The notes under the pieces were generated by a model that worked only from the letters and a program-made list of their open reading frames with translations, searched no databases and was not told the DNA's origin. DNA of 64,000 bases, taken from assembly GCF_040938485.1 (NCBI RefSeq), contig NW_027271682.1, positions 3,906,001 to 3,970,000 of the forward strand. The letters run 5' to 3'. Below are positions 4,616 to 62,707 of the stretch, in pieces. Numbering within the stretch: position 1 is the stretch's first letter; each line of letters starts with the position of its first letter. Made by a program: the position numbers and the translations under genes. The stretch is from Diadema antillarum (Eukaryota).

Positions 4616-5111
4616 ATGCCGCAATCACCGGGGATCGCTCGGCCAGCCGCGCTGGTCGCTGCCTCTGCGGTTCCTGCCTCGTACTTCTGGCTACGTTGGC
4701 GCTACCCACAGTTCTGGAAAGATGTCAAATTTCTGTCACATCTTGCGAAACTCAAGTCCACTCTCAGGCATGACCTAAGTTCCGATATTACGGTTGTGGA
4801 TCATTTTGAGCGTCACACACAGGCTAATCCTTCGCACCCCTGCATTCTGTTCGAGAAACAGGCTTACTCTTACGGAGATGTACAAACCAATGCTAACCGT
4901 GTAGCTCGATGGGTAACTACGGCAGACCCAAACCTGCGTAAAGGGGATGCGGTTTGCATACTCATGCAGAACAGTCCTGTTTTGGTCTGGACATGGCTTG
5001 GTTTCTTAAAGAAGGGCATTATCACCAGCATGCTCAACTTCAACTTGAAAAGCACAGCTCTCCTACACTGTATTAAAGTTAGTGAAGCCAAGAAGCTTGT
5101 ATTTGGAACAG
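4616..5111 (+). CDS. FATP paralogue 1 exon 1
   Basis: [10 protein letters not shown]...[11 protein letters not shown]...HPCILFE...KKLVFGT; donor G|GTGAG. Confidence 0.9.
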
Positions 5112-8100
5112 GTGAGATGCCTTCTGTTGTTCTTCACTCCTTCGTGTTAGTGACATTTAAATTTATTTAAATTTGTTTATCAGTATCACTGTAACACTAA
5201 CAGTTGTGATGTTTTCATTAACTTACCTGTAAAGTAGAGTTGTATTATGAAACCTAGTCTGATATCTGGCATATACAGTCAGATATTAAACACTTTACAC
5301 AGTTATCACAGTAATGCTGCCAAGAGGGGTCAGTGACAGTAGTGCATTCAAGACAATAATGAAAGCAGTCAATGGTCAATTCAATTTGAATTTCAAGATG
5401 TCTGTGGTTGCAGTACAATTTACCAAGATTGAAGACTCCTCCCTGTTTTGTCTGTCACATTTGGTTTGATGTTTTTTGTTCCAGTTTTGCTTTAGTTTAT
5501 TTCTCTTTCCAAGATTCAACTTGTTCAGTGTTGTAGATCATTGTTATCTCAATTTTGTTTTTTGATTTATTTACATATATCAATGATATATTCTTGTTTG
5601 CAGATATGTCCACCTTTCTCCTGTTCCCCTTTTTTATTTCCAGTTCTATGTTGCTTTCACTTTTCAGCTACGGTAGTTTTAATCGTCTTAGACACTCTCA
5701 TTCATATTCTCTTTTAGGTTCAGGATATGCTCTACATTCATCTTTATTTACATGTGCATGTATCCTTCACAGGTTGCCCATCCATGATCTTCTAATAAAA
5801 GGGATAATCACTGACCCTTTCAGGAACCTTCCTTTGTCTCTGCTCACTCCTTTGCTTTCACCCCCTTTCATACCAGATTGGCTCCCTTCTATCAAGACTG
5901 ATCTGCCCCTTGTGTTCCTCTAAGTTTACCTCATGTTTATAGTCCCCACATCTTGGACTTTCCTCTCCAAAACCATATTGTAGACAATCACTGGGACTTG
6001 TTCCCAAAGTAGGGACCCTAGATCAATTGTTTTGGAAGTACATGTATTGCCTGTTTGTTTAATAGTGAGAAATTACCCTTACCCTGTAGTACATGTAATT
6101 TGAAGAGCAAAATCATTGAGTGCTCCATTTGAAAGATACTGCTTGTCAAGGGTCATGGAGTACATGCAAGTCTGTCTCATCTCTTAGAGACGATGTGATT
6201 TCACCCTTGCAGAGTTTCTTGGCCTGGTGCAAGAACTGCTGCCAGAGCTCCGGGCGCTCAACATCGAGCTGTGGATGGTGAACGATTTCCAGGTGTACGG
6301 GGTGGCCCCACCCGTGGGCGTCGTCCCCATGGATCTGTCAACGATGTCCGGTGAACCGTTTCCAAGCGAGCCTATGAGACTGGAGGAGACTGCTGCATAC
6401 ATCTTCACTTCTGGCACCACAGGTATTTAAAACTGACAAAATGTCTCAGTTTCTATTTTTTAAAGCAGTTGGAGATTTGTAGAATATGGCATGCATGATT
6501 TTAGTTACAGCTTTGGTTGTTAAAAAAAGAATGAGTTCTTTGCATTGTGCTCCCCAAATATGCATGTGGTTTAAGTGAATGCTGCAATATCAGTAGAACA
6601 CATCAGTGAAAGTGAGAAAAATTGGACAATCCGTTGAAAAGTTTTGAACTTTTAAAGTTTTGGTGCCACCAAGCTGGATGAGAAGACTTTAACTGTCTGT
6701 TATGTCACAGCTGAACAAAGATATTTAAAAAAATGCAAAGAGAATTTTAAAAGATTAGCATAATGAAAGAACAAGTGGTGACCTTCTTTCAGAATGCAGA
6801 AGAAATTACATTACCCTTACCTGTTGAGGATGAGCCGTGAGTATACTCGTGCAAGTGTCTACACTTGTATGGGATAAAAACAATGTGTACTTTTCATTAA
6901 AAAAAGACATTTTTTGGAATTTTCATCATATTTCTTTTATATTGTTGTTTTGCAGTAATAAGAAGAACTGTTGTAGTCTTCTCGTCCTGCATTGTGTTGT
7001 TGTCACACAACATTCTGAGCATAACATTTTACTCATGTATACATGGGGAGCTATCATCCTTTAGAACATGTTTCTGTGATACCAAGCTGATAAATCAATT
7101 GGGGGTGGGGGGGGGGGGGAGGTGAAGTGCCCTCACTTGCGCATAGACAATTTTCTCTTTAAATTCATGTTTGTACGACAATGACAAAGATTTACATTGT
7201 ATCTAAGGTATGGCCATTGCAGATTTGATTAGAAAGTTTTGTTATCTTTCAATGCCCAGGGTTGCCAAAACCAGCTACAGTTCCACACAGGAAGATCATC
7301 CGAGGGGTTGCCATGCATTTCTTCTCTGGGCTGACCCCAGATGATGTGTACTATGTTACCCTGCCACTCTACCACTCAGCTGGACTGGTTCTAGGTTTGT
7401 CCAGCATGTGGTACTATGGTAAGCATGTCTGATGCTTTATGCATTTGATTTATTTCTACAGGTATCTGCATGCTGTAGCCATTTGTTGTGGTACACAGGT
7501 GACTCCAGTTACACCAAAGTCATCAGGACCAGCAGTTTTCTTTCATTATATCAAAGTTTCATTATAGCTGAGCAAACAAAGCATTTAGAGATAAGTAGAT
7601 TATTTATTTTTGGGATGTTAAGATTGACTTTGTAGTAACAAAATTTTGTTATAACCATGTTCGTTATATGGAGAGTGCACTGTAATTATCTCAAGTCTTA
7701 ATATCTTTTATGTGGTGATTATTAAAGTTACCTACTGTACTACCCCAAGAAAACTTATACTCTTAAGTCCTGTCTAGATGCAACTCAGCTCAATGAAAAC
7801 CCAACCACAAACATGGGCAATGATATGGAATGAAAAATAAAAATAAATCCAAGAGCTATAGAACAGAAGGGTGGGGTTGGAGGGGGGGGGGGGGGGGGAG
7901 GGGTTGAACAAGAACAACTCTGAACTATCAACCTTTTTCAATCAATATTGCCAAGTACCAGGCTTGCTGTCAGGTGAATGTGCTACCTGTAGCAAGCAAC
8001 ATTCATAGGAATTACGTGATTTTTCATTTACACCACAATTGCTTATCTTATTGACTTTATGATTGTACAAATGACCTTTTTCTTCCCATAACACATAATA

Positions 8101-11100
8101 TGCAAAGCAAAAGTGCAAACTGGCTTAACAGAAAAAATGAAAATTGAAACTAATGTAAGAGTACTTCTTATGCTGCATATAGGTGCTACCGTCGCTCTTG
8201 CCAAGAAGTTTTCTGCCAGCCACTTTTGGGATGATATTCGGAGGCACAACGTGACAGGCTTCCAGTACATCGGCGAGCTGTGCAGATACCTGTTGGCACA
8301 ACCAAGGGTTAGTACATGTTTTTTTTTTTTTCATTGTGTTGATACTTATAATGATTTTACGTCAATATTACCAGTAAGTTATTCATGTAATGTCGTATAG
8401 TGACCACCCAGCTCAAAACCGACAAAAAGTTGCAGGTTTGGATGCACTCGGCTGTGCCTCATGCATGCCACACAATTGTAAATACCATTAAGTGCGTTGC
8501 ATCTCCACTAATGCTCTTGCACAACTGTGCACTACATGTATTTGTATATTAATTCAAGAAAACAGAGGATTTCAATTCCTCTGACCACTCTCTGAAGCCA
8601 TCATTTTCTGCGGAAAAATTTGAATGAACACTGGTATCATTCAATAGAATAGTTTCTGCACAACGCTTTTTTGAATGTAATATACTTTGTCAATATTGTG
8701 TGCAGATCTCATTTCCAAATTCATATTATCATTGTCAATCCCAGTGCACATTGAAGAAGACAGGAGCTGCAAGAGCACAAAACATTGTTCTTTCAAATCT
8801 TGAGCACTACATTTGTAATCCACGTTCTATGGTAGTTGAGTGTGTAACGTGATGAGCAAAATTTCAAAGACCTGTGCAATGTATGTCAACTTTTCATTGT
8901 AGGCTCAGCTGTAGTTTGGAAAGATAAAACTGCTTTCTCTTGTGTAAAGAGATTACTGTAAATCATGATATACTCGCGGCATGAAATTTTCGTGAATTGG
9001 AGCCGACAGCCTTTTTCGCAGCATGAAATTTTCGCGAATTGCCTTTGGCATTCAATGCACATATATACAATGTAGTGTAGGTACACATGTAAGAACTTTC
9101 ATGTGCATTTGAATTTCACGAATCTTGGCTCTCGCGAAATTCGCGAAATTAAGATGCATGCAGACATTCGCGCAATTAAAATGCATGCAGACATTCCTCG
9201 TTTTACAGTATGTGTGTATCTCATCAAGGGTCAAAGCAACCACAATGCTGTTATTGAAAGAATATTGTTTGACTTGTCAGAGAGCTTCAGAATTAGGCAA
9301 GAAAATTTTATGTGTGACTCTCTAGGTAGATTATGGGATAGATTTAAACCTTTTGCATTTCTTTCAAGCAAAGTAGTTCAGTCGTTCAAAATGTCAGCTA
9401 AATATGATAATGAAATAAGACTGCCTTCATACCGGGGTTGTTTAGAACCCTGTGTATATGGATTTTACACATGTATGTGTGTGTATTCACATGGACAGTG
9501 TGAAAAAGCTTAGGTCAATATTGAAGCGTAAGTCAATGAGACACTTGTGTGGATAATGATCAGATTACAGGCCTAGCGAATAAAGTGCTTGAAAAGTTCA
9601 AAAACCCTCTTCAGCGTTTTGTCGATTCTAATTCTTTTAAAATACTTCAAATACATACGTAGTGTAAGTGGTATTGCACGCTTTCTTTTGTAGCTTAAAG
9701 TTTGGAATTTGTATGTCTCTGTCAATTGCACAGTTACACTTCATGTGGTTGTTTTGAATTGTTATTTCACTAGCTCTGTGCCTTGAAAAATATATCAAAT
9801 GTGTGTGCTGAGGGTAGATACATTGTTACGCATTGATGCATCATGCATGTGGTACTAGTGCTCTGTGGCCCTGACCAAGAGATGTATATCAGCTTTACAT
9901 GCAGACAAGAATCAGAGTGAAGGTCGAGAAGGGGTCGTTTGACTCCAGTGTCACATTTGGGTTATCTCTAGAGTCAACAAGGTGGTCCATGCCCAATATC
10001 AGACCAGGAGCAAAGTCTGTGTGATACACCAATTAATTAGCTGGTTTTTACTAATGGGGATGAGGCTTTAGAGTAACTGCAGTGCACTTGTTGCAAGATA
10101 AGATACTTTGATATTTCAGTCCTTTGCTTTCTTTAGTACCATATTTCTAAAATGTCTTATGAAGTGATTTTTTTTCTTTTGTCAGTTGTTTTGTTAATTA
10201 AACAAACATTAATGAGGGATGCAGTCTGGTAATAGTCAAAAGAAAATCCTGGATATTGAAGACTAACTTTTAGGTGATTATAACACAAGAAGATGATACT
10301 TGTGAATGAACAGCTGTGTTATATGTTGAACATTTTTTACCATCATGGGTATGCTGTCATAATTGCTTTGTGTGTGTGTCTATGTGTGTGTGAAATTGTC
10401 TTCTATTAGCACTCCTCTTGTCTTTTAATTTTGATTGTTTGACGAAAGATATTTACTTTAGAAATTATTTGAGACTTTTGACTGTACAGAGGTCTTGCTT
10501 TCTGACTCCATGTACTGTACTCCATCTGAGAAAACTGAATACAGTACACTCCCTTTATAATGAACCAGTTATAAAGACCCACTTGGGACTGAGGTCTGGG
10601 GACATGTTATATCTGGAGTTGACCATAATAGTTCCAGCAGATCTTGACATTAGGTTGTCTTTCAAATCATCCTCAAACTATATTCAATCATGAATGCAGA
10701 TCACAAATCTATGATCCTATTTGCTTTATTAGCTCACCTGAGTCAAAGGCTCAAGTGAGCTATTGCGATTGCTCTTTGTCTGGCGTCCGTCGTCCAGCGT
10801 CCTGCGTCGTCCTTCGTGCGTAAACTTTTTACATTTTTATCTTCTTCTTGAGAACCCCATGACCGATTTTCACCAAACTTGGCAGGTAGCATCCCTAGGG
10901 GGATAGGATCTCAATTTGTTCAAATGGGCACCATGGCCCACCTGGGGGGCCCCAGGGGGGGGGGGGGGGCAAACCCCATAAAATTAAGGAATATTTAAAA
11001 ATCTTCCTCTCTAGAACCAGAAGTGATAGGAGTTAGTAAATACTATGAGTTAGTACATTGTTGACTGTAGTTTCAAGTTTGTTCATGGGGGAATCAGGGG

Positions 11101-14100
11101 TGCCCCCCTTGGGACCCAGGGGACGGGGGTGGGGAGGGGTTCTAATGAGGCCTAAATTGTACATTTTCATCTTCACTTTGAGATCCCCATGTCTGATTTT
11201 CACCAAACTTGGTAGGTAGCATCCCTAGGGGGATAGATCTCAATGTGTTCAAATGGGAACCATGGCCCACCTGGGGGGCCCCCAGGGGGGCCCAAACCCC
11301 CTAAAATTAAGGAATCTTTAAAAATCTTCTCTAGAACTAGAAGTGATAGGGCTTAGATAATACTATGAGTTAGTACATTGATGACTGTAGATTCAAGTTT
11401 GTTCATGGGATTTGGGGAATCAGTGGTGCCCCCCCCCCCCCCCCCCCTTGGGACCCAGGAGAGGGGATGGAGATGGGTCCTGATGGGGCCTGAATTGTAC
11501 ATGTTCATCTTTTTCTTGAAAACCTCATGATGAATTTTGACCAAACTTAGCAGGTAGCATCCCTAGAATCTCAATTCCTTCAAATGGGCACCATGTCCCT
11601 TTTGGGGGGGCCCCCTAGCCCCCCCCCCCCCCCCCACACACATTAAGGAATATTTAAAATCTTCTACTCTAGAACCAGAAATGATAAAGCAAAGTTAATA
11701 CCATGAGTTTGTACATTGATGACTTTAGTTCCAAGTTTGTTCATTGCAGAGCCCCCCCCCCGAGAGTTGAGGGGGAGGGGGATCCATATGAAGACCTAAG
11801 TTTTCAATGTTCTCAGGTAAGAGTGTGCAAGAATGCATGGAAGGTGAAATTGCGATACTCAGGTGAGCGCGTGACCCCCGGGTCTCTTGTCTTTGCATTT
11901 ACAATCTTCCACAAAGATCAGGTCAGTAGGTCAGGATTTAATTTTATCTGCATTTCATCAATTGTAGCTATATGCTTCAAACTTGGTATGGTGGCTAGCC
12001 ATGATAAGACAGTTTTACATGTTTAGGTGCTAAATAGCTGCTGTAGAAGTGCAAGATTGAAGGTCAATGAGTTTTAGCTTCAGAAAATTTAATGCCTGTC
12101 CTAAGAGATTTAAGTGGTGAAATTTTGTAAGAATAGATCCTTTTCCATTATTCCGTAAGAGCATTTCACAAGTATGATTTTTTTTAGAAGGATTTATAAA
12201 ATCAGGAGACACATTTGCAGTCATAGTTTTAAGTCAGTTCATGAGACAATGTCAAAGACTGGTGCCGTGCTTGTAACTGGCACTGAGTGCACAGCAGGGG
12301 TTACAGTACAATGCAGTGACAGTATTCGACAAGCGGCAGTATTGACCTCATTGTCGGTCAATATCAATTAAACAAACAACACGTGAAGGGATATTTTACT
12401 TGTATTTTGTTTTATTTCCTTATCAATTTCCTTTGTAAGTATGAAACATGACAATGCCATACGGTACATATAATGATGATGTTAGTAAATTGGTTATAAC
12501 TGTGTATATCCCTAGAAAGTGCTGTATTTGAGCATATCTCTCTTATCCGGCCAAACCGATTATCCAAACTCCCACTGGTTCCGACCTGGCCCGATAATCA
12601 AGGTTTTACTGTACCTTGATTTGATCACAGTGTGGCAGTCAGTGGCATAATGATTATCACTTGACACTTTGATGTCCATGGTTGTATTCTGATCATCCAC
12701 ATAAATTTTGCCCCCTCTCTTCTGTTCAGCGCATGGATGATGGCAAGTACCCGCAGAGATTGAAGGTTGCCTGTGGAAACGGACTGCGTCCAGAAATCTG
12801 GGAGGAGTTTCAGAAACGCTTCAACATCGATAAGATCATCGAGGTGTATGCGGCCACGGAGGGAAACTTTGGCTTCATTAACTTTGAAGGGAAGGTGGGG
12901 TCCATCGGGAGGTACCCCTGGATAATGAGGGTAGGTGCTTCTCATTATTTCTTCTCCCACTATGTCTGTAGACAGAAACAGAATGATGAAAACAAACAAA
13001 CAAACAACCCTAGACCCTTTCCCTGACCCTAATCTTAACCTACATCCTGGACCTTATCCTGAGCCTCACCCCCTAACCCTTGCCCTAATTTACTATTACC
13101 TATCACTATCAGTATTTTTATTTATTTTTTATTTTTTATTTTCTTTTGGGGGAGGGGTAATTTTCCTCAGGGGATAATTGTCCTGATACACTTGTGATGA
13201 GTAGTGGTACATACACTGTATACAAATAGCAATATACAGGGTTAATCTTGCTGGTAGGTCTTATGATACTGTATACACTCTTAATAGCAAGTCTAATTTT
13301 TTTGCAAATCAAGACTTTTACACAGTTTCATGTGTGGTGAAATTCATAATCATGGAGTACAGAAATGAATGCAAAAGTGTACTCGTGCGCATTACATCCA
13401 TTTCCCCTTGAGAGTTTATATTTTTACAACGTGTTGCAAAACTTGAGATTAGCGCCTGACTTTTGAAATTTGAGGAAATAAAAACCTCACAGTATATACG
13501 GCATATCTGTATACGGTATTGTATATTTGTAGATTTCTCGAAGGTCAGTGACTAGCTGTAACTGTGTGCATTTCATATGGTTGCTCCATCTCAGAAACTT
13601 CTGGACAACATAGAGCTTGTGGAGTACGACTACGCGTCTGGAGAACCAAGACGGGGCAAGAATGGATTCTGTGTCCCTGTACCAATGGGTTTGTGACGTT
13701 TCCTCACGTACCTTTGATATCTGTTTCTAATCGGTCCTATTGTCAGTTGTCTGCATTGGAATAATTATCGGATTATTAAAGTGCACTAGACATATTCATT
13801 TTCTTCACTGAATGTAAGGAAACTATATGCTAAACTTATGGACATGCCAGCATGTTTATATGTGTTTTAATGGACATGTGAGCTGTAGCAAGAGATTTTT
13901 TTTTTTAATTAAAAAAAAAATTTTTTTTGGGGGGGAATATGACATGGTTTTTACATTCCGTGACTTTCACCACTTTGGAGTCGCAGATTTGCATTAAAGT
14001 TGCCTATTCAGGTAATGTGAAATGCTTTCATATCAGGATATAGAGAGTATGCCAAGAAGATAAAGACTGTTTTTGAGCAGATTCTTAAAGTGAATCACCA

Positions 14101-27200: not shown

Positions 27201-30200
27201 GTCGAGATCTGGAAAGAGTTTCAGACGAGATTTAAAATCGGCCAGATTTTTGAGTTCTACGGAGCTACGGAAGGCATATTCACTTTCGTCAACTTCGACG
27301 GACGTTTTGGGACCGTGGGAAAATATTCATGGATAATGAGGGTAAATCCTCGCACGGAATCGCACAGACGGATTTTCATAAGAATCATAAATTCGGGAAA
27401 ACATGTCTTGTGAACGAAACTACTTAATTAGGAAGTTGGAAATTGAAAGTTCACTTTATCATTGTTCTCAAAAAAAAGAAAGAAAAAAAGATTTCGAGAT
27501 TGCATTAATTGTCATTGTCATGTCAGGTATACAACAGTCACTGTTTCAACGATTGCGTTGAAGTCTGAAACTGATACTGCAAGAGCATTCACAAAAAAAA
27601 AAAAATAATAATAAGATCGATAATGGCTTGATATACTGGTCTTCTAAAGTCATCCAGAACGTTGATGCCACAAGAAAAGTATCATTTGAGTGGAGTTGTC
27701 ATCCAATCACGCATGACTTCTTCTTCTTCCAGGTTAGCAACCGCAATTAACAAAGATAATTATTCTGTCACTTTTGTAGAGAGATTGGCGTGCACTTTGC
27801 AGAAATTTTGATAATTAGCTTTGGTTTTAATTGATAATTGCAAATAAGGGACTCAATTTCAATAAACTTAAAGAAAGTAATTAAAGAATACTATTATTTT
27901 TTTCATACTGGTATTTATTCTATTTACACAGTACTGTTACTTTGATAACACTGCTCTCCTGCAACTCTCATACCACATCGATATCCAATGAGGTTTCTTG
28001 AAATAACCATATAAATCAGATTAAATGATTCGGTTTTTTTCCTCCTGCATGTAGGCCTACGTTATCTTGACCTCAATTCAAATAAAGAATTCATTCATCT
28101 CAACAGAAAGGCTGTTTGGTATACTACTGTTTGCTTATTACCTCAGTGAAAGATTGTTCTTTTTCATGTCTTTATGTTTTTATCTGTTACATGGCAATGT
28201 TATGTATTAGATAACGTCGACGTGATAACATGTTGCCTTCCGTATTAATTACTCTCTGCACTGACACATGTGTTTTTATATTAACTATAGAGATTCTTCG
28301 ACAACATTGAAATCGTCGAGTATGACTTTGCCAGCGGAGAACCAAAGCGAGACAAACATGGAATGTGTATTCGTGTACCCACAGGTATGTCATAATCCAC
28401 GTAGCATTTTAACAAGGCATTCAGGCCAAGCGTTCGTTTAAACAACCAAAGGCAAATATGAAAAGATAGGCGGGTTTAAAGACTGACCAGACGACCGTTC
28501 TCATTCGTTGTTTTTTTATGCAATGCTCAGCCTTGAATCTAATAGGTCACTGCTACAAGACACTGGAGAAGAGAGCTTCCTTTTTTTGTATCATAAGCCC
28601 TCTAAGATCTGAATAGACAGTTGATAGAGATCATAATAACAGACTAAAGAGGAAAACTATAACTAGTCTGAAGGCACTAAATTGCCTAATATGTTGCACA
28701 CTAACTCCAAACGGAACCAACCAATTCTTGATCTTGCGGCCAATCGGGAGCGATGCCCAAGTGTGGATTGAGTAAATGCAGCCATTTAATAGAACTCATC
28801 AGTTCAGTTCGAGGAAAATCAAGCAATCCGTTCGAAAGTTATGAATATATCACGTTTCGGTGCCGCCATCTGTGGATGAAAAAAGCGACAAAAAGTTCGT
28901 GACGTCACCGCGGGAGAACGATCTGAATGAAAATTTAAAGTGAATTAAACGTTTTTTCATCTCTCTAGCATAATTAAAGATCACTTGACTTATCACTTTC
29001 AGAAGACAGAGGGAATTATCATTTATCTTAACATTTTTGTCAGTGACTTTAACTTAAGTCAGGGCAAATGTACTTTTCATAAAATAATGAAACTGCATGG
29101 GAAACTATCTACATAATTTCTTTATCCTTGTCCGGCAGTGACGTCACGAACTGTTGTAGCAGGGATGGCGGCTCAGAAGTTTTAAAGATTCATAACTTTT
29201 GAATTACTTATCAGTTTTTCTGATGTGTGCTACTAATATTGCTGCATTCATTCAACCCACATGTCATTACCTCCGCCAAGGAAGGAGGTTATGTTTTCGT
29301 TACCGTTTGTTTGTTTGTTTGTCCTTGTGCAAAATAACTCAAAAAGTAGTTAACGGATTAGAATGAAACTTGCAGGAAAGGTTGAGAATGACACAAGTAA
29401 CAAACGATTAATTTTTGGTAGTGATCCGAGAATTTTGGGGGAATTTATGAAGGATTTTTGATATTTTGGCAGGTAGTCGAGTCAATGAACTTGAGGGTTT
29501 ATGAAGTTACAAAGGCTTCTAGATTGGGAAATCTGGCGACTTTCAGCACACAATGCTATATAAGTATGTATGGGTGGAAATCACTGATATCTCTATGATG
29601 GAAGCACAAGATCAGTGGTGGAAATGGGCTCCATACTTGGCGGAGGTGTGCGCTCTCAGAGTGCTTTTCTAGTTATATTGTGTATATCATTCCCCTTTAA
29701 CTGAAGAAAAAACAAATCTTGTGCGTGGTCGTTCCAACTACAGTAGAGGAGACATTAGTCGAAACTCCTTCCACCTTATTCGAGCAAACTGTCAGATGGG
29801 AACTACTTCGTTTCGCGTAAGCCACGAAGAGGGGCCTTATGTCAAACAGAAAACGGATAAATCCTTTTGAGAACTTAGTCGCTCTGATAACCGACCTGTT
29901 CAGATTCCGAGCAGAAATCTAAAGGCAGGCCGCCATAATCCAAAAAAGCGCATTGTTAACTCATCCGTCCTTCATTGGAATAAAACTTCTTTATACAATA
30001 ATTTATTAGGCCTATGTAATAATGGATCGTGGTCTCCCAATTGTTTTACATAACGAATAAAGGGGAGCCTGGACTGCTGCTGATGAAGATGCTTGGCAAG
30101 ATACAGTTCGCCGGCTACAAGGGCAAGCGTGAGATGTCCGAGAAAAAGATCGTAAGAAACGTAAAGGTGCCAGATGACATGTATTTCAACTCTGGTGACG

Positions 30201-32430
30201 TCATGCGAATCGACAGTGAAGGTTACGTCTACTTCCTCGACAGAGTCGGAGACACTTTCAGGTGGGAAGATAAGATTTTCGCGACGCGGACGTTCAGAGG
30301 AAAACAACAACAACAACAAAACTTCTGCGCTTGCGCAAAATCGCTTATCAAAATCGATCTGTTTATTAGTAAGTCCTAAATCTCGCTCTATCCGAGTTTT
30401 TACTCCGCGTTCTGGGCTATGTTTTCTTTCGCTCAATATTCACGGCGGAGAGAGCTATTTACTGCACTGATCATAAATTATGGAGGCGTCATTTATTTCA
30501 TAGGTTGGGCCCTTGCGCGATCTGAATCTTCTTTGCAACACGACGCAGGGAGAGAATGGCCAACGCAATCGTCGTCTTAAACGCCCGCGTCGCAGATCTA
30601 GTACTCCATTCCATAGACATTAAGATTTTTATCTCATAGGTCACTCATCATAAGCAGTAAGCAGAGATTGTTGCTTCAGACTACCCGCCGAAATGTATCT
30701 GATCGCAGTCTGATGAAGCCGACTTGGTTGGTCGAGCCTCAGATGGGTGTCGGACATAATATCGCGCGTGATCTTCGTCGGTCGATCTGTCTTATCGGAT
30801 CTACGCTCGACATGTCTGACGCTGGCCTGGTTGTCGACCAACACGAGTCAGATTCATAGGACTGCGATCCGATACACTCCGGTGGGTGGCCGGAAGCGAT
30901 AAACTTAGCCCCCGATGAGTGGCCGATGAGAGATAATCTCTGTGGAATGGAGGTATAAAGCTCCCAATGGAATTGACGGGTTTGTAAATATGTAAATAAG
31001 TTAGATGATGATGTCATGGGGGGGGGGGGTGGGTTCATGTTTAATTATGCCCCAGTCTCAAATCGTAGAATATCTGACTGATCACTATTTTGAAGCTATT
31101 TAGGCAGGTATAGCATTAAGTTTTATACTCTTGAAGCAGATCTATGGCAAGATGTGAGGTGATAGCATCGTCAACTCGAACGTTTACATATTCATATTAA
31201 CTATTGTTGATTGTTGATGCAAATTGTTTTGCAGATACTAGTAGAACTTCGCAATTAAAAAAAATATAATCCCTAAGTTTCATGCGGTATTGATCAAATT
31301 TTCTCTGTTGTGCTTACAAAATTATATGCTTTCTTTTTCCTCCTTACTCTTTCTTATTGACTCCATCTTTCTTTTTCCAACTAATTTCAGCTGGTCCGAA
31401 ATCAAGTATCTCACGCTTTCCTCGTCTTCATTTTTTTAAAAACATAACGGCTTCCTGCTGTAATGTCGAATGACACGTTTATATAAAAAAAAAAAAAACT
31501 TTCATTCTCCTGTGTGTGTGTTTCTGTCTTTATGTCCTAGATGGAAGGGAGAAAATGTGTCCACTTTTGAGGTATCGCACGTTCTTAGTTGTTTTCCTGT
31601 CATCGAGGAAGCTAACGTGTATGGCGTACATGTGCCAGGTATGTAGAAGGAAATAAGTATACAATCAACACACGAATCAACATCACGTTGTATTCTCAAA
31701 CTTGCGATGAACATGGTGAAGGTACGAGTGTATTACGCTTTAAGTAGGGAGGAATGTGTGAAGTGGCTGGTTGAGCGTTGGAAATAATTATGTATCTTTA
31801 GTGTCTCGAATGCCGTAATGTGAAGTTTAGAGCTATAGGCTAACATGTAATCGCATGAACATGCGCAGTATCATACCTCAAACCGAGAGCACTCTTTCAT
31901 TGCATGAGAAGGTTGACGAGGGCATACAACGCATTACCGAGCCAGCATAATGGGAACCTACAATGTTGGTTTTTGAAGACCTTTTTTTTTTAAATCCCTT
32001 TTTCATGTTTGTGACTGGGTAACTGACATCATGACGTGTAATTATCGTAGAGGGCAGTATGTAATGTCTGATATGATCTGCTGCAAATATCGAATCTGTC
32101 GTACTTTCAATATCTGCTTGTACAACAGGACACGATGGGAGAGCGGGTATGGCGGCGATTGTCGTTCGAGAGGGCGCCACCATTGACTACGGGGATCTCT
32201 ATCGTCACGTGACTTCCTCGTTGCCGACCTACGCGCAGCCCAAGTTCCTGCGCATGGTGGGTGCGACGGATCTAACGTCCACATTCAAACACAAGAAGTC
32301 GGATCTCGTCAAGCGAGGATTCAACCCCGACTTCGAAGAGGTATTCATCGTCGAACCTTCCCAGGAGACGTACGTGCCCATCACACAGCGACACATTCAG
32401 GCACTGACAAGTGGCCAGTCAAAACTGTGA
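23787..32430 (+). CDS. SLC27A2: FATP / very-long-chain acyl-CoA synthetase, paralogue 2, 629 aa, 9 exons
   Basis: join(23787-24282,25021-25233,25970-26131,26585-26709,27141-27341,28291-28384,30063-30261,31541-31638,32129-32430) = 1890 nt. Intron positions and phases match paralogue 1. Motifs: [14 protein letters not shown]; FYGATEG; [11 protein letters not shown]...[16 protein letters not shown]; ends SKL. Confidence 0.93.
25021..25233 (+). CDS. FATP paralogue 2 exon 2
   Basis: acceptor ccacag|; [10 protein letters not shown]...[10 protein letters not shown]; donor G|GTACG. Confidence 0.92.
25970..26131 (+). CDS. FATP paralogue 2 exon 3
   Basis: [12 protein letters not shown]...PLYHSAA...WMK; donor G|GTAAC. 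Confidence 0.92.
26585..26709 (+). CDS. FATP paralogue 2 exon 4
   Basis: [42 protein letters not shown]; donor |GTACG; not in ORF track. Confidence 0.92.
27141..27341 (+). CDS. FATP paralogue 2 exon 5
   Basis: KDNDGKY...GNGLR...FYGATEGIF...WIMR; donor |GTAAA. Confidence 0.92.
28291..28384 (+). CDS. FATP paralogue 2 exon 6
   Basis: acceptor ctatag|; [31 protein letters not shown]; donor G|GTATG. Confidence 0.9.
28760..29700. mobile_element. TTAA-type (Kolobok-like) foldback MITE interrupted by a HINE; left end eroded
   Basis: Left arm aatgcagc...aatccgttcgaaagttatgaat is the reverse complement of right arm attcataact...ctactaatattgctgcattcattcaacccac. The right end ...cattcccct-ttaa resumes after the insert. 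A related arm fragment lies at about 6570-6660. Confidence 0.6.
29266..29674 (+). mobile_element. Helentron-associated non-autonomous element (HINE), nested
   Basis: Subterminal inverted repeat acctccgccaag (29269) / cttggcggaggt (29636); (GTTT)n; 3' hairpin gcgctctcagagtgc; ends ctagtt. Confidence 0.8.
30063..30261 (+). CDS. FATP paralogue 2 exon 7
   Basis: acceptor aataaag| (AAG); GEPGLLL...YFNSGDVM...DRVGDTF; donor AG|GTGGG; 199 nt as in the paralogues. Confidence 0.9.
30600..30950. mobile_element. Degenerate foldback element in paralogue 2 intron 7
   Basis: gcttcagactacccgccgaaatgtatctgatcgcagtc... is an imperfect reverse complement of ...gactgcgatccgatacactccggtgggtggccggaagc; outer arms ctccattcca / tggaatggag. 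Confidence 0.55.
31541..31638 (+). CDS. FATP paralogue 2 exon 8
   Basis: acceptor gtcctag|; [15 protein letters not shown]...NVYGVHVP; donor G|GTATG. Confidence 0.92.
32129..32430 (+). CDS. FATP paralogue 2 exon 9 (terminal)
   Basis: acceptor caacag|; [11 protein letters not shown]...TSTFKHKK...SGQSKL*. Confidence 0.93.
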
Positions 32431-48608: not shown

Positions 48609-48649
<41 letters not shown>

Positions 48650-49357
48650 GCCTAGACCTGTGCAGAGCTGAAAATTGGTTTTAGAAAACTCGTAGATAAT
48701 GTTCTCAGAGTTTTTTTTTTTTTTTTTGAAGGAATTTGTGGATACAGACTGCCTGGTAATCAAGGAGAGATTATTCCACAGCAGTAACCGTGAAGGTCCT
48801 GTCACCAGCTAGATTTCAAGTAATTGGGTACATGATGTAACTGAGTTGAAAGCTGTGACTTGAGCAAAGAGATTTTTAAATCCCTTTGGATTTTAGCATC
48901 CATTTGTTTTTTTGAAGACTTATTATTTTCCGACTTTCATATTTGTGACTATCTGACATTTTTTTTTTTTTTTGCAAATATTGTGGGGCAAAGTATGTCT
49001 ATGGTATGTCATCAGTACCCATCTGACGTGCATTCAATATCTGCTTGTACAACAGGACACGAAGGGAGGGCGGGTATGGCGGCGATTGTCGTTCGAGAGG
49101 GCGCCACCATTGACTACGGGGATCTCTATCGTCACGTGACTTCCTCGTTGCCCACCTACGCGCAGCCCAAGTTCCTGCGCATGGTGGCGGAGACGGATCT
49201 GACGTCCACATTCAAACACAAGAAGTCGGATCTGGTCAAGCGGGGATTCAACCCCGACTTCGAAGAGGTATTCATCGTCGAACCTTCCCAGGGGACGTAC
49301 GTGCCCATCACACAGCGACACATTCAGGCACTGACAAGTGGCCAGTCAAAACTGTGA
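37229..49357 (+). CDS. SLC27A2: FATP / very-long-chain acyl-CoA synthetase, paralogue 3, 629 aa, 9 exons; recent sister of paralogue 2
   Basis: join(37229-37724,38417-38629,39406-39567,43188-43312,43733-43933,44768-44861,46272-46470,47042-47139,49056-49357) = 1890 nt. Exon lengths are identical to paralogue 2 and parts of the introns still align with it. Ends SKL. Confidence 0.93.
38417..38629 (+). CDS. FATP paralogue 3 exon 2
   Basis: acceptor ccacag|; [10 protein letters not shown]...YIFTSGTT; donor G|GTAAG. Confidence 0.92.
39406..39567 (+). CDS. FATP paralogue 3 exon 3
   Basis: [12 protein letters not shown]...PLYHSAG...LIK; donor G|GTAAC. Confidence 0.92.
40740..41520 (+). mobile_element. 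Internally deleted CR1/L2-clade LINE relic (AP-endonuclease start joined to post-RT C-terminus)
   Basis: [12 protein letters not shown]...[10 protein letters not shown]...[18 protein letters not shown] (EEP endonuclease motifs, TAG at 40893), then ...MSWY|[11 protein letters not shown]... and, after frameshifts, NRAIRTIL...[14 protein letters not shown]...YLLRS..KLFLPKP.TDYYKR, typical of the CR1/L2 ORF2 tail. Confidence 0.85.
41728..42249. repeat. Hairpin MITE whose right arm plus flank is tandemly triplicated (152-153 bp units)
   Basis: Units start at 41808, 41961 and 42113 and are near-identical. 41731-41795 is the reverse complement of the first part of each unit. Confidence 0.9.
42479..43172. 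mobile_element. 694-bp MITE with 4-bp AAAT TSD (Sola1-like)
   Basis: TIR gtgaccctgcatcacaaaacgaac / gttcgttttgtgatgcacggtcac; aaat at 42475-42478 and 43173-43176; the empty site is visible in paralogue 2 intron 3. Confidence 0.85.
43188..43312 (+). CDS. FATP paralogue 3 exon 4
   Basis: acceptor attcag|; [16 protein letters not shown]...[16 protein letters not shown]; donor |GTACG. Confidence 0.92.
43733..43933 (+). CDS. FATP paralogue 3 exon 5
   Basis: [20 protein letters not shown]...VYGATESVF...WIMR; donor |GTAAT. Confidence 0.92.
44768..44861 (+). CDS. FATP paralogue 3 exon 6
   Basis: acceptor aactag|; [31 protein letters not shown]; donor G|GTATG. Confidence 0.9.
46272..46470 (+). CDS. 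FATP paralogue 3 exon 7
   Basis: acceptor atgaag| (AAG); GEPGLLL...YYNSGDVL...DRVGDTF; donor AG|GTGAG. Confidence 0.9.
47042..47139 (+). CDS. FATP paralogue 3 exon 8
   Basis: acceptor atcctag|; [15 protein letters not shown]...VHVP; donor G|GTATG. Confidence 0.92.
47291..48280. mobile_element. TACG/CGTA-rich transposon derivative (possibly PIF/Harbinger), one terminus recognisable
   Basis: Begins taa-agctacggtcaca where intron-8 homology to paralogue 2 stops; dense cgtacga/tcgtaag motifs at both ends around a purine/pyrimidine-rich core. Confidence 0.45.
48314..48386. repeat. (AATAC)n microsatellite
   Basis: aatacaatac... Confidence 0.95.
48609..48646. repeat. (CA)n microsatellite
   Basis: cacaca... 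Confidence 0.95.
49056..49357 (+). CDS. FATP paralogue 3 exon 9 (terminal)
   Basis: acceptor caacag|; [11 protein letters not shown]...TSTFKHKK...SGQSKL*. Confidence 0.93.
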
Positions 49358-53570: not shown

Positions 53571-54066
53571 ATGTCTGCTGATTGGAATTCCAGACAGGGA
53601 GCCGCAGCTCTTGCTGCCGTGTCCATTCCAGCGGGATACGCCTGGTTTCGCTGGAAGTACCCTACCCTAATTGGCGACCTGCAACAACTGGGCAGCATTC
53701 TCTTCCTTTATAGGAGTATGGTCGAGCTGGACCGATCCCGGACATCCATGGTGGACGTCTTCGAAAAGACTGCTCAGGAACGTCCCGATCACCCATGCAT
53801 CCTGTTCGAGGAAGATTCGTACTGCTATGCCGACGTGTCCCGCAGGGTAAGCATGACGGCGCGGTGGATCAGCGGTTCGGACCCCAGCTTAAAGAAAGGT
53901 GACGCGGTGTGCGTCCTGCTACACAACGGGCCGACGTTTTTGTGGACGTGGTTGGGACTGCTGAAGCTAGGCGTAATTTCGAGCCTGATAAATTACAACC
54001 TTCGTGGAACTACACTTCTGCACTGCATACGAACAAGCGAAGCCAAGAAACTCATCTTTGGTTCAG
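53571..54066 (+). CDS. FATP paralogue 4 exon 1
   Basis: [10 protein letters not shown]...KKLIFGS; donor G|GTTGG; 496 nt. Confidence 0.9.
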
Positions 54067-55843: not shown

Positions 55844-55879
<36 letters not shown>

Positions 55880-58800
55880 TTTTTTTTTTGGGGGGGGGGG
55901 GGAGGGGGGATAGAGGGCCGGAGTGTTGTATCTGGGCTATTTTCCTGTGGCCTGATAAATAAGTTCACGTAGATGTCTTCAATTTGCAATGAAAATCCTA
56001 GTGACATTCTCTCTGATCAATACCCACTCTCTATACAGAGTTTCTACCCATTGTTTGCGACATCCTGCCCGACCTCCGCCAGTTGGGCATCGACCTCTTG
56101 ATGGTCAACGATACGGGCGAGAGCATCGAGTCACCGCCGAACGATGTGGTTACCATGGACATCGACACGGTGACCGAGGAATACTTCCCGTCAGTCCCCA
56201 TTAGCAGTCTGGACGATGTCGTTTCTTATATATTTACGTCGGGCACAACAGGTCAGATATCGATACGAAAACATTGGTGATTGTTAAATAATTATGATTG
56301 CATATTTACATATATGTGTATATATATATATCTTTTGATGTCACCTTAGGGAGACATTACATGGTTATTATCATTTTTATAGTATACAAAGGAGAAACCT
56401 TCAGAATACAAATTTGTGTCTCCTTACCTTAAAGGCACTGTTTGCCATTGGGAGCAGTGATTTGAAAAAAATGTTCGAGATATCACATTTGATGCATATG
56501 TGTAGGTCAGTTATATCACAAAACATCCTACCATGTAAAAATTTTGCAATAAAGCAAAGCCTAAGATATAAGGAGATATCACTATTTTTCTCAATAAACC
56601 ATAACTGTAGACGGTTTAGTCTAGAAACAGTTTTATTACAACTATTGTTCACATTTTGTATATTTAACGGTACTTAACATTAATTATACTGATTCAAATT
56701 TATACATTGTTTGTTTCAATCATAACTCACATTTCAGAACTATTTGAAAGCACTAAAGCTGGGTTTTTGTTTCATCTGCAAATGGTGAATAACGCCTTTA
56801 ACGTTTTCTACTATAATCCCACTTAATCCATGCTTTGCTGCTGACAACACTTACAATGTAGTACACATTTTTTCATACAGCATGTACACTGCCTCACTTA
56901 AGCTGGATCCAGAGTTATATAAAAGCAATGAAAAAGCATCTTTGGAAAGTGGACGCCACGTTTCTAGTGCGCAATTAATCTTTCATGAAATTTTAGTTGT
57001 TAAAACTACCTTATGTAGAGCCAGCAGCAACGGTCGCCGTCACTGACTGTACTACATACAACGACAACACGAAAAAAAAACAAACGAACAAATAAGTGAC
57101 TCCCCCTCATCACAATGACCGAACTTTGTAACGAAAAGGTTCTGAGCAAAGCAATTTGGCATAGATATACTTGTTTAAAAACAAAAACAAAAAAAGTTCA
57201 GCCCAACAGCAGTGCCAATACTACTCGCGAACTCATGTTTAATAAAAACACCACACAACCCAAACCAATAAAGCTGGAAGCCCAAATCAGCAACCAAGAA
57301 AGGACAAAAAAATTGTATCACTTTGGTTTATGGCAACTTTTTCTTTTCTTTTCTTTTCTTTGTGATGATGGAAATAAATAAACTATTGAATTGAATTGAA
57401 TTGAAAAAAATTGAATTGAAACCTTTAATAATCATTATTCATCTCATGAATAGGCCTACTTGAATGTCATCTGATTTATGATCATCACTTCTATCACTAC
57501 TCAAGGGGTAATCATAACCACATCAGAGGGGCAGAGATTTGTATTCGTTTGTCTGTGTGTTTGTTAATTTGCTGGTACTGTTTGTCTTTCGTGTATACTA
57601 GGGATGCCTAAACCGGCGGTCGTCACACATAAGAAAGCTGTCGGTGGTGGGATGGTTCTGAAGAAGACTTACAACGCCAAACTTCACCCAGACGACGTGT
57701 ATTACGTACCGCTTCCTCTCTATCACTCCTCAGCACTCCTAATAGTGGTGTGTGGGAGCTTTACTGCAGGTGAGCTGTATACAGTATATTTTAAAAAAAT
57801 ACTATCGGATTTTTGCGTTGATAACACCCAATATGATTAAACCGTCTAAATGCTACTTGAGATATTATGTCTTAGCTCTATTTTGCAGAAAACCTCATTC
57901 AGTTTGGTTAAGCGGTCACAGAGCAATGTGGATTGTTGTAAAGCATGTCATGAGTCTGATTCTTCCTAGTTTAGCACTTGGATGCTCTTGGAACTGCGTA
58001 TTAATATGTAAACACAATAGACAGAACTTGCAGGGAAGGGATTCCTGGCATGCTGTACAAAAATCCTCATTTCTCTTTGACCACTGAAGCAATTTGAATG
58101 GGGTTTTCTGTAAATTGTGGGCAATGAGTTATAGTTAATTTCATATCCTGAAATTGTGTTTGGANNNNNNNNNNNNNNNNNNNNNNNNNNNNNNNNNNNN
58201 NNNNNNNNNNNNNNNNNNNNNNNNNNNNNNNNNNNNNNNNNNNNNNNNNNNNNNNNNNNNNNNNNNNNNNNNNNNNNNNNNNNNNNNNNNNNNNNNNNNN
58301 NNNNNNNNNNNNNNNNNNNNNNNNNNNNNNNNNNNNNNNNNNNNNNNNTCCATTCGGAGCCATACAAATCAACAAGAAGATACAACATTATACATGTAAT
58401 GGTCATACCCAGTAGTTGCGAAAACAGAAATACATTTAAAAAAAATGTATATCTGTTTTAAATGAGAACAAGATAATTTCATTTCCTGGTTGATAAAGTG
58501 CATTTGGTTTTAGCGTAGATTTAGAAACCACGCACAATATGAATTTCTTGAAAGCGAATGAATATCAGTGAAAAATGGGAGAAAGTTATGCATGTTGTGC
58601 AGCTTTAAAAAAAAGATTATCTGTTTACTATTTTGACAAGACAAATTGTGATGTCATGGAAAAAATACCCATAACCTGCAGGGATGAACTTTACTTTCTC
58701 ACTCCTCGGCCGGATTAATACTTGTATAGGGAGCAGCTCTTACATGTCAGCTGCTTCCCATGAGCGTACACTCCTGTCTACTCGAGAGCCTTCTGTCCCC

Positions 58801-61800
58801 TATTTTTTTTTTCAGTCATAATCCCCATGAAACCTATGCTGCCTCATTTCTTTTAGCTCACGCCACCTTTTAAGTTTGATTTAAAAGTTAAAAAGTGGAT
58901 TTTTTTTTCCGTCACAATTATAAACTGTTCGATTTTTATTTGACTGTTTGTTTGTTTCTTTCTTTCTTTCTTTCTTTTTTCTAGGCTGTACCATTGCTAT
59001 AGCGCGGAAGTTTTCTGCGAGTCGTTTCTGGGATGACATACGGAAGTACAAAGTTACTATCTTTCAGTACATCGGGGAACTATGCCGCTACCTGCTGGCC
59101 CAGCCAGCGGTACGTTTACGCTGCGGTGTCTGATACTATTGTAACACTTTTTGCCTTTCGAAGAAGTGATATGCTTTTCCTCACCTAAGTTAAAGCGATT
59201 AGATTTCGTTTTATACATGCGTACCTGCGCATTTTGCTTGCTTTTTTTTTAATCATCTGCTTTGAGGCATTTTTAACAATGTACCGCCTTTCGTATTCAT
59301 TGTGTATATCAAACCGCCTTTTAAGTGAGTGACGTGAATATTTCAACATCTATCTATCTATCTAGCTGATTATATTATGTTCCCTGCCAGGTGTGAATAT
59401 GGAAATAAACTGCCATTCCACGATCACGTTGACTTCAAAAAAATAGAACGAAATCAAAAAGCAAAAGGGGCGAGAGTTTATTCAGATGGAACGTAAGATG
59501 ACAAATTTGTTACATGTTAAAGGAAATCAGTGATGTAGGTCACAGCCATTAAGGCAAGTTGTGTGAGGAGTTTCACATTAACCCGCACAAACCTTTGATA
59601 AATTTCTTTTCTTAGAATAAATCATTAATGTACTATTACAGATTTGTCATAACTTAACAGGAGAAGTGTTACAGTGCTAAGTTATCGACCAAAAAAGGAT
59701 TTTCATCTTTTATGGAAGCCAATGACAGAGTTGTGAGGTTGTGTGCGAAAACACTGTTTGATGAGAACAAGTGAAACTTAAAACGTTCATATATTTTCTG
59801 TCAATACCATGAATATGTCGAAATCTAATCAGAATTCTCCCTTATGGGTTGTAAGAGTTTACTACGTTGATCCAAGTCAACTTATGCATGAATTAGCTTT
59901 GATTTTAAAAGTGTTTGGTTCAAGAAGAAGGAGGCTGGGAAGTTAAGATGGAGAGAACGAAGAAAACTTAGGACTAAATAGGAGAATAAAAACAAAATGA
60001 AAAAGATATGTTCAGAAGTGACAGAAGGACAAAACAAATAAGAATGACTCTTCCGACAGTACGCTTTTCATACCGGGGTCGTCTCACGAGACCGACACCC
60101 ACGAGTTACACGGCCAACGACTTCGACACTTCATAAAGGTCTGTGAATCATACAACCCACGAATCATACAGCCCATGAATTCGACACTAGGCAAACTAGG
60201 ACCACAAGTTCGACACTAAGCAAAAAAGGCCCATGAGTTCAACACTGGCTAGGTAAAATTGGACCCACGAGTTCGACTCTGCATCATGATCTCGTGGGCC
60301 TAGTTTTTGTAGTGTCGAACTCGTGGGCCTTGTTTGCTTTTGTGTCGGACTCATAGGCCTTATTTGCTTAGTGTCGATTTCATGGACTGTATGGCTCGTG
60401 GACTGTATAAACCGTGGGCTGTATGCTTCGTGGGTGTCGAACTCTTGACGTGCACCTTTCCTACTCACAGAAAGAGAACGACGGAGTGTACGAGGTACCG
60501 TTACGAGCAGCCGTCGGGAACGGACTGCGCGTTGAGATCTGGAAAGAATTTCAGACGAGATTCAATATCGGCCGGATCATCGAGTTCTATGGAGCTACGG
60601 AAGCCATAACCTCTTTCATCAACGTGGAGGGACGCGTGGGTTCGGTCGGCAAATATCCATGGACAGTGCGGGTATAAGCCTCACATAAGAATAATATGTC
60701 AAGTGCCTATAGACTTTATGTTTCATTAGGAAGCATGGTTGACAAGTTCAGACGTGAATACCAAATTACAATAGTCCCCAAGTAATTTTTATCGTGCCCT
60801 CAGATACACCAAAGAGGTAATGGAAGAGCAATGCAGCACTGCTCTGAAGTTAGAATATAGAATAGAATCAAACTAGCAGGATTGTAGAGATTACCTCAAA
60901 GTGGAATGCAAGTAACAAGTAAGTTCTGAAATTTTCATTCTTTTATTTTTCACAAGTTATATCGTATATTATACACATAAAGTAATGATCACATGGCCTA
61001 GTCGGTCCCCCTTTGACCTATTGACACAAAATCTTTACTGGATTGTTTTTCTTGCCAAGGAATCGAAATCTGTATCCTTCGATTCAATTTTTGCCTGTGC
61101 TGCAAACGGTGTACAGTAAAATTTCATTTTCTTGTTCGTTTCTCATGTTGTACATTATTTTGTGTAAAACTTGCCCCGTTCAATGGTTGAGTAAAAATGT
61201 ATGTGTGACTACAGTTTGATCACTTAGTTTTATATTTATCATCACATAAACGTGAACTTATTTGCAGAAGACTGGAAAGTAATGCGAATCTACTGAAATA
61301 TCGTCACACAATCAAATGTATTTCTCAGGTAATCATATCTACCTTTTTATTTCTATCTGTTTTGTCTTTGCTTCGACAGAAATTTTTCGATAACATCGAG
61401 GTAGTAGCGTACGACTTTGCCACCGGCCAACCAAAGCGAGACGGCAGCGGCATGTGCATTCGTCTACCCGCAGGTACCTCAAGAACCCTAGAAACTATCC
61501 ACAGTAGTCATTTGTATACAGTAACGTATTTTCTTTTATCTAATTTGGTGAAGAAAAAAAAAAAACATTAAAAATCCCTGCTCCTATGCAAGTAATTCTG
61601 TAAAGTTGCGAAGAAAAGAAAAACAATAATCATTGTAAAACGTGTTTATTAAAGAATTTTGTCGTGCATAGATACATTAGTGACTTTTTAAAGCAAAAAG
61701 TTGAACTGTTTGTTTCTTTTTTTTTTCTTGTTACACGGTTTGTCTATGTCATGGCATGGTGAGTTGGCTCAGTCGGTAGCGCGTCTGGCTCACAATCCTG

Positions 61801-62236
61801 AGGACTCGGGTTCGAACCCAAGTCTGGACTGAGCAATGTTGTGTGTAATCTCGCTTCATTCATTCGTCGCAAAGAGCAGGGTGTTCACCCGGTGAAGTGC
61901 TTCCACCTCACATCCAACTGGACCCTAAGGAATACCAGCTTTAATAGTGTAGCTGAATATGGGCTGTCAAGCCATCTTCTCTGATGTGAATGAACCAACA
62001 AACAAACAGTGGCATGCGCATGCAGAGGACGATGTTGTAGAGTAGATTGGAGTTATTTTCAGTGATCTGATCGTGATTGTAATTCGCATTAACGTATCGG
62101 CAACTCTACGCGCCATCTTCCACTTCCTCCTCTTGAATGCTTTCCTGTGCTTTTTGCTGTTGTGCCTTTTCGTCTGCCTCTTCTTGACCCTACTTCCCCT
62201 ATTTCCTCATCTTCTTCTTTTCCTTCCTCTATGTCT

Positions 62237-62271
<35 letters not shown>

Positions 62272-62707
62272 ATTTTTCCTGAATCATCATCGTCTTCGTC
62301 ATAATCTGTCTCATCTACAGGTATCATTATCTAATTTCCATGTCTACCTATCCCTAATTGCTTTTCGCAGTACAAGTATCAGTATCTTTAACAGAAGAGG
62401 GAGCACTTTATCAGCATTTACTGAGTTAAACTCAACGTTATAATCATGTATGAGCACGTAGCATACCCTACAGCATATTTAAATAAGTTAATATTTTCTT
62501 CAACGAAGGAGAGCCCGGACTGCTGTTGATGAAGATGATGGACAGGAGACAGTTCGCCGGCTACAAGGGCAAGCGTGAGATGTCCGAGAAAAAGATCGTA
62601 AGGAACGTAAAGGTGCCAGATGACATGTATTTCAACTCTGGTGACGTCATGCGAATCGACAGTGAAGGTTACGTGTACTTCATCGATCGAGTGGGAGACA
62701 CCTACAG
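53571..62707 (+). CDS. SLC27A2: FATP / very-long-chain acyl-CoA synthetase, paralogue 4 (exons 1-7; exons 8-9 beyond the window)
   Basis: join(53571-54066,56039-56251,57602-57769,58985-59109,60471-60671,61380-61473,62509-62707,...). Phases match the other copies and there are no stops or frameshifts in exons 1-7. Confidence 0.9.
56039..56251 (+). CDS. FATP paralogue 4 exon 2
   Basis: acceptor atacag|; [10 protein letters not shown]...[10 protein letters not shown]; donor G|GTCAG. Confidence 0.92.
57602..57769 (+). CDS. FATP paralogue 4 exon 3
   Basis: [12 protein letters not shown]...PLYHSSA...FTA; donor G|GTGAG; 168 nt. Confidence 0.92.
58165..58348. other. Assembly gap (N run)
   Basis: Run of n. 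Confidence 0.99.
58985..59109 (+). CDS. FATP paralogue 4 exon 4
   Basis: [16 protein letters not shown]...[16 protein letters not shown]; donor |GTACG. Confidence 0.92.
60075..60456. mobile_element. Foldback MITE built of cccacgagttcgacact subrepeats (copy 1)
   Basis: Left arm cacgagaccgacacccacgag, right arm ctcgtgggtgtcga...gacgtgcacc; same family at 63004. Confidence 0.75.
60471..60671 (+). CDS. FATP paralogue 4 exon 5
   Basis: acceptor tcacag|; KENDGVY...GNGLR...FYGATEAIT...WTVR; donor |GTATA. Confidence 0.92.
61380..61473 (+). CDS. FATP paralogue 4 exon 6
   Basis: acceptor cgacag|; [31 protein letters not shown]; donor G|GTACC. Confidence 0.9.
61758..62008 (+). mobile_element. tRNA-derived SINE
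   Basis: A-box tggctcagtcgg (61765), B-box ggttcgaaccc (61809), no acceptor stem, about 170 nt of non-tRNA body, (AAAC)n tail. Confidence 0.8.
62233..62270. repeat. (TCT)n microsatellite
   Basis: tcttcttct...; source of the poly-Ser and poly-Leu ORFs. Confidence 0.9.
62509..62707 (+). CDS. FATP paralogue 4 exon 7
   Basis: acceptor acgaag| (AAG); GEPGLLL...YFNSGDVM...DRVGDTY; donor AG|GTCAG. Confidence 0.9.

Follow-up and report, generated by a model that had tools for sequence, protein, structure and literature searches.

A FATP2-like tandem gene array in the sea urchin Diadema antillarum and its counterparts in other urchins

Does a row of closely related acyl-CoA synthetase genes in one sea urchin genome represent a metabolic module peculiar to its lineage, or the ordinary growth of a familiar gene family? 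The question is raised by a 64,000-nucleotide stretch of the Diadema antillarum assembly GCF_040938485.1 (contig NW_027271682.1, positions 3,906,001 to 3,970,000, forward strand; hereafter the window), equivalent to ~3,906,001-3,970,000 of scaffold JBFRCO010000794.1 (4.22 Mb), in which four FATP/SLC27A paralogues (P1 to P4) lie between the ATG of P1 at position 4616 and the final base of P4 exon 7 at position 62707. A preliminary description had proposed a lineage-specific expansion serving as an undescribed lipid or specialised-metabolite module. These analyses show that the array is real, intact, of a well-known family and conserved across sea urchins, and that it reflects ordinary gene-family growth with birth-and-death change in copy number. 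It is very probably a FATP2-like row that grew by tandem duplication under purifying selection, with a predicted function in the peroxisomal activation of very-long-chain and branched fatty acids.

Gene structure and extent of the array

Coding blocks were located by self-comparison of all open frames in the window, in which nine similar coding blocks recurred in four sets on the + strand, and splice sites were set by GT-AG ends, a preserved frame and an identical junction across copies. The four same-strand paralogues are intact and share their intron positions and phases, as the preliminary description had stated: all introns are GT-AG, their positions are identical and their phases are 1,1,1,0,0,1,2,1 in P1, P2, P3 and P4. 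P1 (4616..18186, + strand) is complete with nine coding exons (4616-5111, 6213-6422, 7260-7418, 8183-8307, 12730-12930, 13595-13688, 14311-14509, 16987-17084 and 17879-18186), as are P2 (23787..32430, + strand; exons 23787-24282, 25021-25233, 25970-26131, 26585-26709, 27141-27341, 28291-28384, 30063-30261, 31541-31638 and 32129-32430) and P3 (37229..49357, + strand; exons 37229-37724, 38417-38629, 39406-39567, 43188-43312, 43733-43933, 44768-44861, 46272-46470, 47042-47139 and 49056-49357). Each of these three copies splices to exactly 1890 nt (629 amino acids) with a single terminal stop, and the earlier observation that this length is kept despite compensating exon lengths was borne out (210/159/308 in P1 versus 213/162/302 in P2 and P3). 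P4 (53571..62707, + strand) is represented in the window by exons 1-7 of a 631-amino-acid gene (53571-54066, 56039-56251, 57602-57769, 58985-59109, 60471-60671, 61380-61473 and 62509-62707), with a GT donor after 62707; it is interrupted by the window end, not broken. The models of P1, P2 and P3 are 100% identical, with zero mismatches, to RefSeq proteins XP_071506154.1 (named long-chain fatty acid transport protein 6-like by NCBI), XP_071506155.1 and XP_071506156.1 (both named FATP2-like), and the 498 residues of P4 in the window equal the first 498 residues of XP_071506157.1 (also named FATP2-like) without a mismatch. The four genes are therefore already annotated in RefSeq (XP_071506154 to XP_071506157).

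Extending the window rightwards, as had been proposed, completed P4 and revealed a fifth copy. The window's final 1856 bases match the beginning of the downstream locus on JBFRCO010000794.1 at 100% identity, and in that locus P4 exons 8 and 9 lie at ~64290-65427 in window numbering, 0.3-1.4 kb beyond the window end. P5 (XP_071506123.1, 624 amino acids) begins 6.7 kb downstream of P4 and has the nine-exon structure of P1-P4, with an intron 7 of 36 kb (20028-56029 of the downstream locus on the same scaffold, outside the window). A second row, ~99% identical, is present on contig JBFRCO010001981.1 (188,633 bp). Because the assembly is oversized relative to the haploid estimate (1.73 Gb versus 0.70 Gb) and 84% of its BUSCOs are duplicated (bioRxiv 10.64898/2026.05.24.727502), this second row is probably an uncollapsed allelic haplotig rather than an additional duplication. 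The annotated P5 model ends at exon 7 (490 amino acids) both on the haplotig and in Diadema setosum, and the last two exons were probably missed across the 36-kb intron in these short models. P5 also has a long branch in the tree, and A replaces G in the conserved GD of its A7 motif. No other gene was called in the flanks viewed (~10 kb after P5 and ~8 kb before P1, haplotig).

Two assembly gaps fall within introns, one at 15309..15552 in P1 intron 7 (14510-16986) and the other at 58165..58348 in P4 intron 3 (57770-58984), and neither affects coding sequence. The P1 and P4 proteins continue without loss over both gapped introns, and P2 and P3 have neither a gap nor an exon at the matching places. 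The P1 exon 7/8 junction reads ...GDTFR followed by WKGENV..., as in the gap-free P2 and P3, and the junction at the gapped intron of P4 is in phase 1 and falls where it does in the P2 and P3 proteins, with the allelic contig collinear on both sides of the 58165-58348 gap.

Family, catalytic residues and predicted targeting

Searches were done exon by exon. Exon 1 of P1-P4 matches PF00501 (AMP-binding; E 1e-15 to 1e-16), P1 exon 9 matches PF13193 (AMP-binding_C) above cut-off, and precomputed annotations of the identical RefSeq proteins list both domains, which places the copies in the ANL superfamily. The P-loop TSGTTGxPK and the FATP/VLACS signature, which crosses the exon 7/8 junction so that its second half in P4 was read from the RefSeq model, are present in P1-P4 and assign them to the FATP/ACSVL (SLC27) family. 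Human FATP2 is the best relative of P1 exon 1 in the PDB, and the closest database relatives are all named FATP2, 5, 6 or VLACS; the family assignment of the preliminary description is upheld. Full-length D. setosum and D. antillarum relatives were reached with a profile of exon 1 from the four copies against a representative library, and the wider urchin family with word searches using those stored full-length proteins; the profile search gave many non-ribosomal peptide synthetase megasynthases and exon-sized fragments, along with ~15 useful full-length relatives.

The P-loop, the A5 TE motif, the FATP signature and the A10 lysine are all intact. Furthermore, the AMP/phosphate/Mg-binding and catalytic residues reported for human FATP2a (T225, S226, T228, T229, K233, H268, S269, N339, E360, T365, E366, D465, R480 and K572; PMC13562550) are identical in P1-P5 at 14/14 positions, with the residue numbering checked against a 620-amino-acid mammalian FATP2. 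Because the motifs are intact and all 14 residues identical, P1-P5 are most likely active acyl-CoA synthetases, each of which would convert fatty acid and ATP to acyl-AMP and then pass the acyl group to CoA. The P-loop methionine (TSGTTGMPK), previously regarded as derived, occurs also in camarodont orthologues and in two further types of urchin paralogue. Residues of the acyl tunnel and entry pocket vary between P1 and P2-P4, among P2-P4 and across the whole family; at human position 244, for example, the P1 clade has R where P2-P4 have G or A, and further differences fall at positions 369, 392 and 434. Such tunnel differences may divide the substrate range between copies.

The array proteins resemble human FATP2 (SLC27A2/ACSVL1; PDB 9vzp, 20zn; PMC13562550) in belonging to the same two-domain ANL fold family (620 versus 629 amino acids) and in sharing the FATP signature along with the 14 AMP/Mg/catalytic residues, at ~40-44% identity and with most acyl-tunnel and entry-pocket residues different. 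The human SLC27A2 gene is single and outside any tandem row, whereas the urchin copies are tandem. A peroxisomal role is known for human SLC27A2, whose catalytic domain faces the peroxisomal lumen (PMC10822792), and is predicted for the urchin copies, with different protein ends: human FATP2 terminates in LKL, whereas the urchin array copies terminate in SKL or AKL and are without a strongly hydrophobic N-terminal helix.

These termini fit the peroxisomal targeting signal type 1 (PTS1) pattern (S/A/C)(K/R/H)(L/M). P1, P2 and P3 end in SKL as read in the window, and P4 and P5 in AKL and SKL, respectively, in their RefSeq models; dispersed urchin paralogues end in LKL, LTL, YKL or IQF. Kyte-Doolittle windows found no strongly hydrophobic N-terminal anchoring segment in P1-P4, in which the best 19-residue window of the first ~88 residues scores 0.8-1.1; mammalian FATP2 scores 2.1-2.3 and the dispersed urchin paralogues 1.7-2.5. 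Because the proteins carry SKL/AKL ends and no strongly hydrophobic N-terminal segment, they are most likely imported into peroxisomes by PEX5, and there they would activate very-long-chain and branched fatty acids for peroxisomal oxidation. The weak N-terminus lowers the case for a membrane-anchored transporter, not that for an acyl-CoA synthetase. Among 87 deuterostome FATP2-like proteins, a PTS1 end (SKL, AKL or ARL) pairs with a weakly hydrophobic N-terminus in ~6/6 phylogenetically independent pairs (sign test p ~0.03) and non-PTS1 ends accompany a hydrophobic N-terminus, a pattern that suggests two alternative targeting modes, switched several times among these proteins. We tentatively raise the possibility, at odds lower than even but not negligible, that the array genes form a targeting class of their own, acyl-CoA synthetases of the peroxisomal matrix that are soluble or peripheral, carry PTS1 and lack an N-terminal anchor, and that this class was repeatedly gained or lost in deuterostomes; within it, P2, P3 and P4 of Diadema might divide substrates via the acyl tunnel, such as branched fatty acids derived from phytol or very-long-chain ones from algae in an algal grazer.

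Counterparts in other species and history of the copies

Arrays of the same layout are found in four other urchins. D. setosum carries P1, P2, P4 and P5 in that order on a single strand of chromosome OZ188192.1 (XP_072167567, XP_072167273, XP_072167096 and XP_072167126), Strongylocentrotus purpuratus has three tandem copies (XP_030832716.1, P0168 and P0173), and Lytechinus variegatus (XP_041464866 to XP_041464868) and Lytechinus pictus have three each, according to consecutive accessions. As in D. antillarum, these copies share one strand, with the P1 type first and P2-type copies after it, nine coding exons and SKL ends; exon boundaries fall at matching residues in S. purpuratus and L. variegatus, and in the latter a second copy comes after the P1 orthologue and a MAM-domain gene lies upstream. 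Camarodonts have 3 copies, D. setosum 4 and D. antillarum 5, and the additional ones arose independently in Diadema and in camarodonts.

Maximum-likelihood trees were built from 87 rows (quick) and 36 rows (careful), with no FATP1/3/4 sequence among them, and place all urchin FATP2-like genes in one clade. The P1 clade holds 1:1 orthologues from all five urchins (D. antillarum, D. setosum, S. purpuratus, L. variegatus and L. pictus; support 100/99). P2, P3 and P4 form a clade with their D. setosum orthologues (100/100), so the subclade of paralogues 2, 3 and 4 that had been proposed is recovered with support of 100, and this clade is sister to a camarodont clade with an independent a2/a3 duplication (100/99). 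The idea that P1 is ancestral was rejected on these trees: P1 is an older, separate paralogue, one of two old lineages that each have orthologues in other urchins. The proposed lineage-specific expansion holds only in part, in that the P2/P3/P4 triplication is confined to Diadema and the array itself is not lineage-specific.

Beyond urchins, hemichordates, sea stars, brittle stars, crinoids and amphioxus have each undergone separate expansions, in which several genes often share a scaffold; such sharing was seen in brittle stars, sea stars, acorn worms and amphioxus. The same gene family has been listed as expanded in Acanthaster planci, and the authors tied that expansion to xenobiotic tolerance; seven A. 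planci copies met in the searches lie on contigs of a single length (278,818 bp) and hence presumably on one contig, and the expansion arose independently in sea stars. Literature searches of a limited library found no description of the urchin array considered here.

Synonymous distances order the events within Diadema. The ratio of nonsynonymous to synonymous substitution rates (dN/dS) is 0.12-0.25 in every pair, indicating purifying selection. P2 and its D. setosum orthologue (P0331) differ by a synonymous distance (dS) of 0.115, and the values for P2 against P3 and for P3 against D. setosum P2 are 0.244 and 0.257, respectively; P4 is older (dS ~0.7) and P1 is saturated. With P4 as the outgroup, 13 codon changes are common to both P2 orthologues. 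Together, the synonymous distances and the 13 shared changes indicate that the P2/P3 split is older than the split between D. antillarum and D. setosum, and they rule out P3 as a duplicate restricted to D. antillarum. Therefore, either P3 was lost from D. setosum or the assembly of that species lacks it; neither a P3 gene nor a remnant was found in the 8.7-kb P2-P4 spacer of D. setosum (19924-28682 of that locus).

This evidence shows a row built by repeated tandem duplication of the unequal-crossover type. An old split separated P1 from a P2-like lineage before the divergence of diadematoids and camarodonts. The P2-like gene then triplicated in the Diadema lineage, with P4 arising first and P2 and P3 later, all before D. 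antillarum and D. setosum separated. P3 is now missing from D. setosum, and all copies are under purifying selection with their catalytic residues kept.

One tract departs from this order. P2 exon 7 (tract 30060..30263, + strand) shares with P4 exon 7 (62506-62709) a likely gene conversion: nucleotide identity between P2 and P4 is 92% in exon 7 compared with 75-86% in the other exons, and that between P2 and P3 is 81% in exon 7 compared with 88-97% elsewhere. A short conversion tract between the non-adjacent P2 and P4 is the probable explanation, and the event would be old because D. setosum P2 exon 7 is of the P2 type and differs at 5 of 199 nt.

Several repeats lie in and around the genes. 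Intron 3 of P3 contains a 152-bp unit repeated 2.9 times at 99% identity (41808-42248) and measures 3.6 kb, compared with 453 bp in P2; it probably received a recent insertion with an internal tandem repeat. Intron 4 of P1 contains a 338-bp unit repeated 1.9 times (11103-11744). The P1-P2 spacer holds a degenerate 8/16-bp minisatellite of ~55 units (20604-21139) that mimics long open reading frames in all three frames. At 4035-4141, 475 bp upstream of the P1 start codon, ~17 units of telomere-like (CCCTAA)n with variants form an interstitial telomeric repeat inside the 4.2-Mb scaffold. An Rfam search of the window gave no match.

Competing explanations and significance

The module envisaged in the preliminary description, lineage-specific and activating unusual lipids, steroid side chains or polyketide starters, has in its favour the Diadema-specific P2/P3/P4 triplication and the differences between P1 and P2-P4 in the acyl tunnel and entry pocket (positions 244, 369, 392 and 434). 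Tunnel residues vary family-wide, however, and variation alone is no mark of unusual chemistry. Similar arrays in related taxa, which had been named beforehand as counting against such a module, occur in the same order in four other urchins, and scaffold-sharing genes extend across ambulacrarians and amphioxus in several deuterostome groups. A specialised-metabolite cluster brings together several enzyme classes, but the window holds paralogues of one enzyme only: its ten non-FATP open reading frames have no Pfam domain match, no other enzyme class was seen in the window or within 10 kb of the array ends viewed, and the neighbour in L. variegatus is the MAM-domain gene. We therefore consider the specialised, and in particular the polyketide, version of the locus very unlikely. 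Slightly less improbable, although still unlikely, is the idea that at least one young copy, above all P3, is silent or decaying and intact merely through youth. P3 has neither counterpart nor remnant in the D. setosum array, and RefSeq XP_ models can rest on homology alone. It nonetheless retains an intact 629-amino-acid open reading frame, canonical splice sites, all 14 catalytic residues and SKL, its dN/dS to P2 is 0.24 at a dS of 0.24, where a value near 1 would be expected without constraint, and with P4 as the outgroup it has 18 changes versus 20 on the P2 side and is not accelerated.

Least probable of all is an artefact in which haplotypes or reads were misplaced in tandem. The assembly is heavily uncollapsed, as its size and duplicated BUSCOs attest, and the region contains two N gaps, but the paralogues are 53-89% identical in protein, with dS from 0.24 to saturated, compared with ~99% identity between haplotypes; the allelic haplotig holds the same row, and the chromosome-level D. 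setosum assembly has the orthologues in the same order. Paralogue divergence, haplotype identity and D. setosum gene order together rule the artefact out.

Growth of a FATP2-like row by tandem duplication, with a predicted peroxisomal function, accordingly remains the explanation that we favour, and some points weigh against it. D. setosum lacks P3, which shows that a close relative can do without at least one copy, and no RNA run came up in a run search with P3 exons 4-9 (43180-49179). Catalytic activity, substrates and import into peroxisomes are read from sequence, hydropathy was scored with a simple Kyte-Doolittle window and no membrane-topology predictor, and placement in the trees covers only the FATP2/5/6-like part of the family.

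The importance of the array beyond cataloguing is limited, as the genes are in RefSeq already, under the names put forward in the preliminary description, and the tandem layout is common to other urchins. Copy numbers of 5, 4 and 3 in close species nevertheless make it a neat case of birth and death for a predicted peroxisomal lipid enzyme, and the coupling of PTS1 to loss of the hydrophobic N-terminus is a possible guide for studies of how FATP2-type proteins are sorted between the endoplasmic reticulum and the peroxisome.

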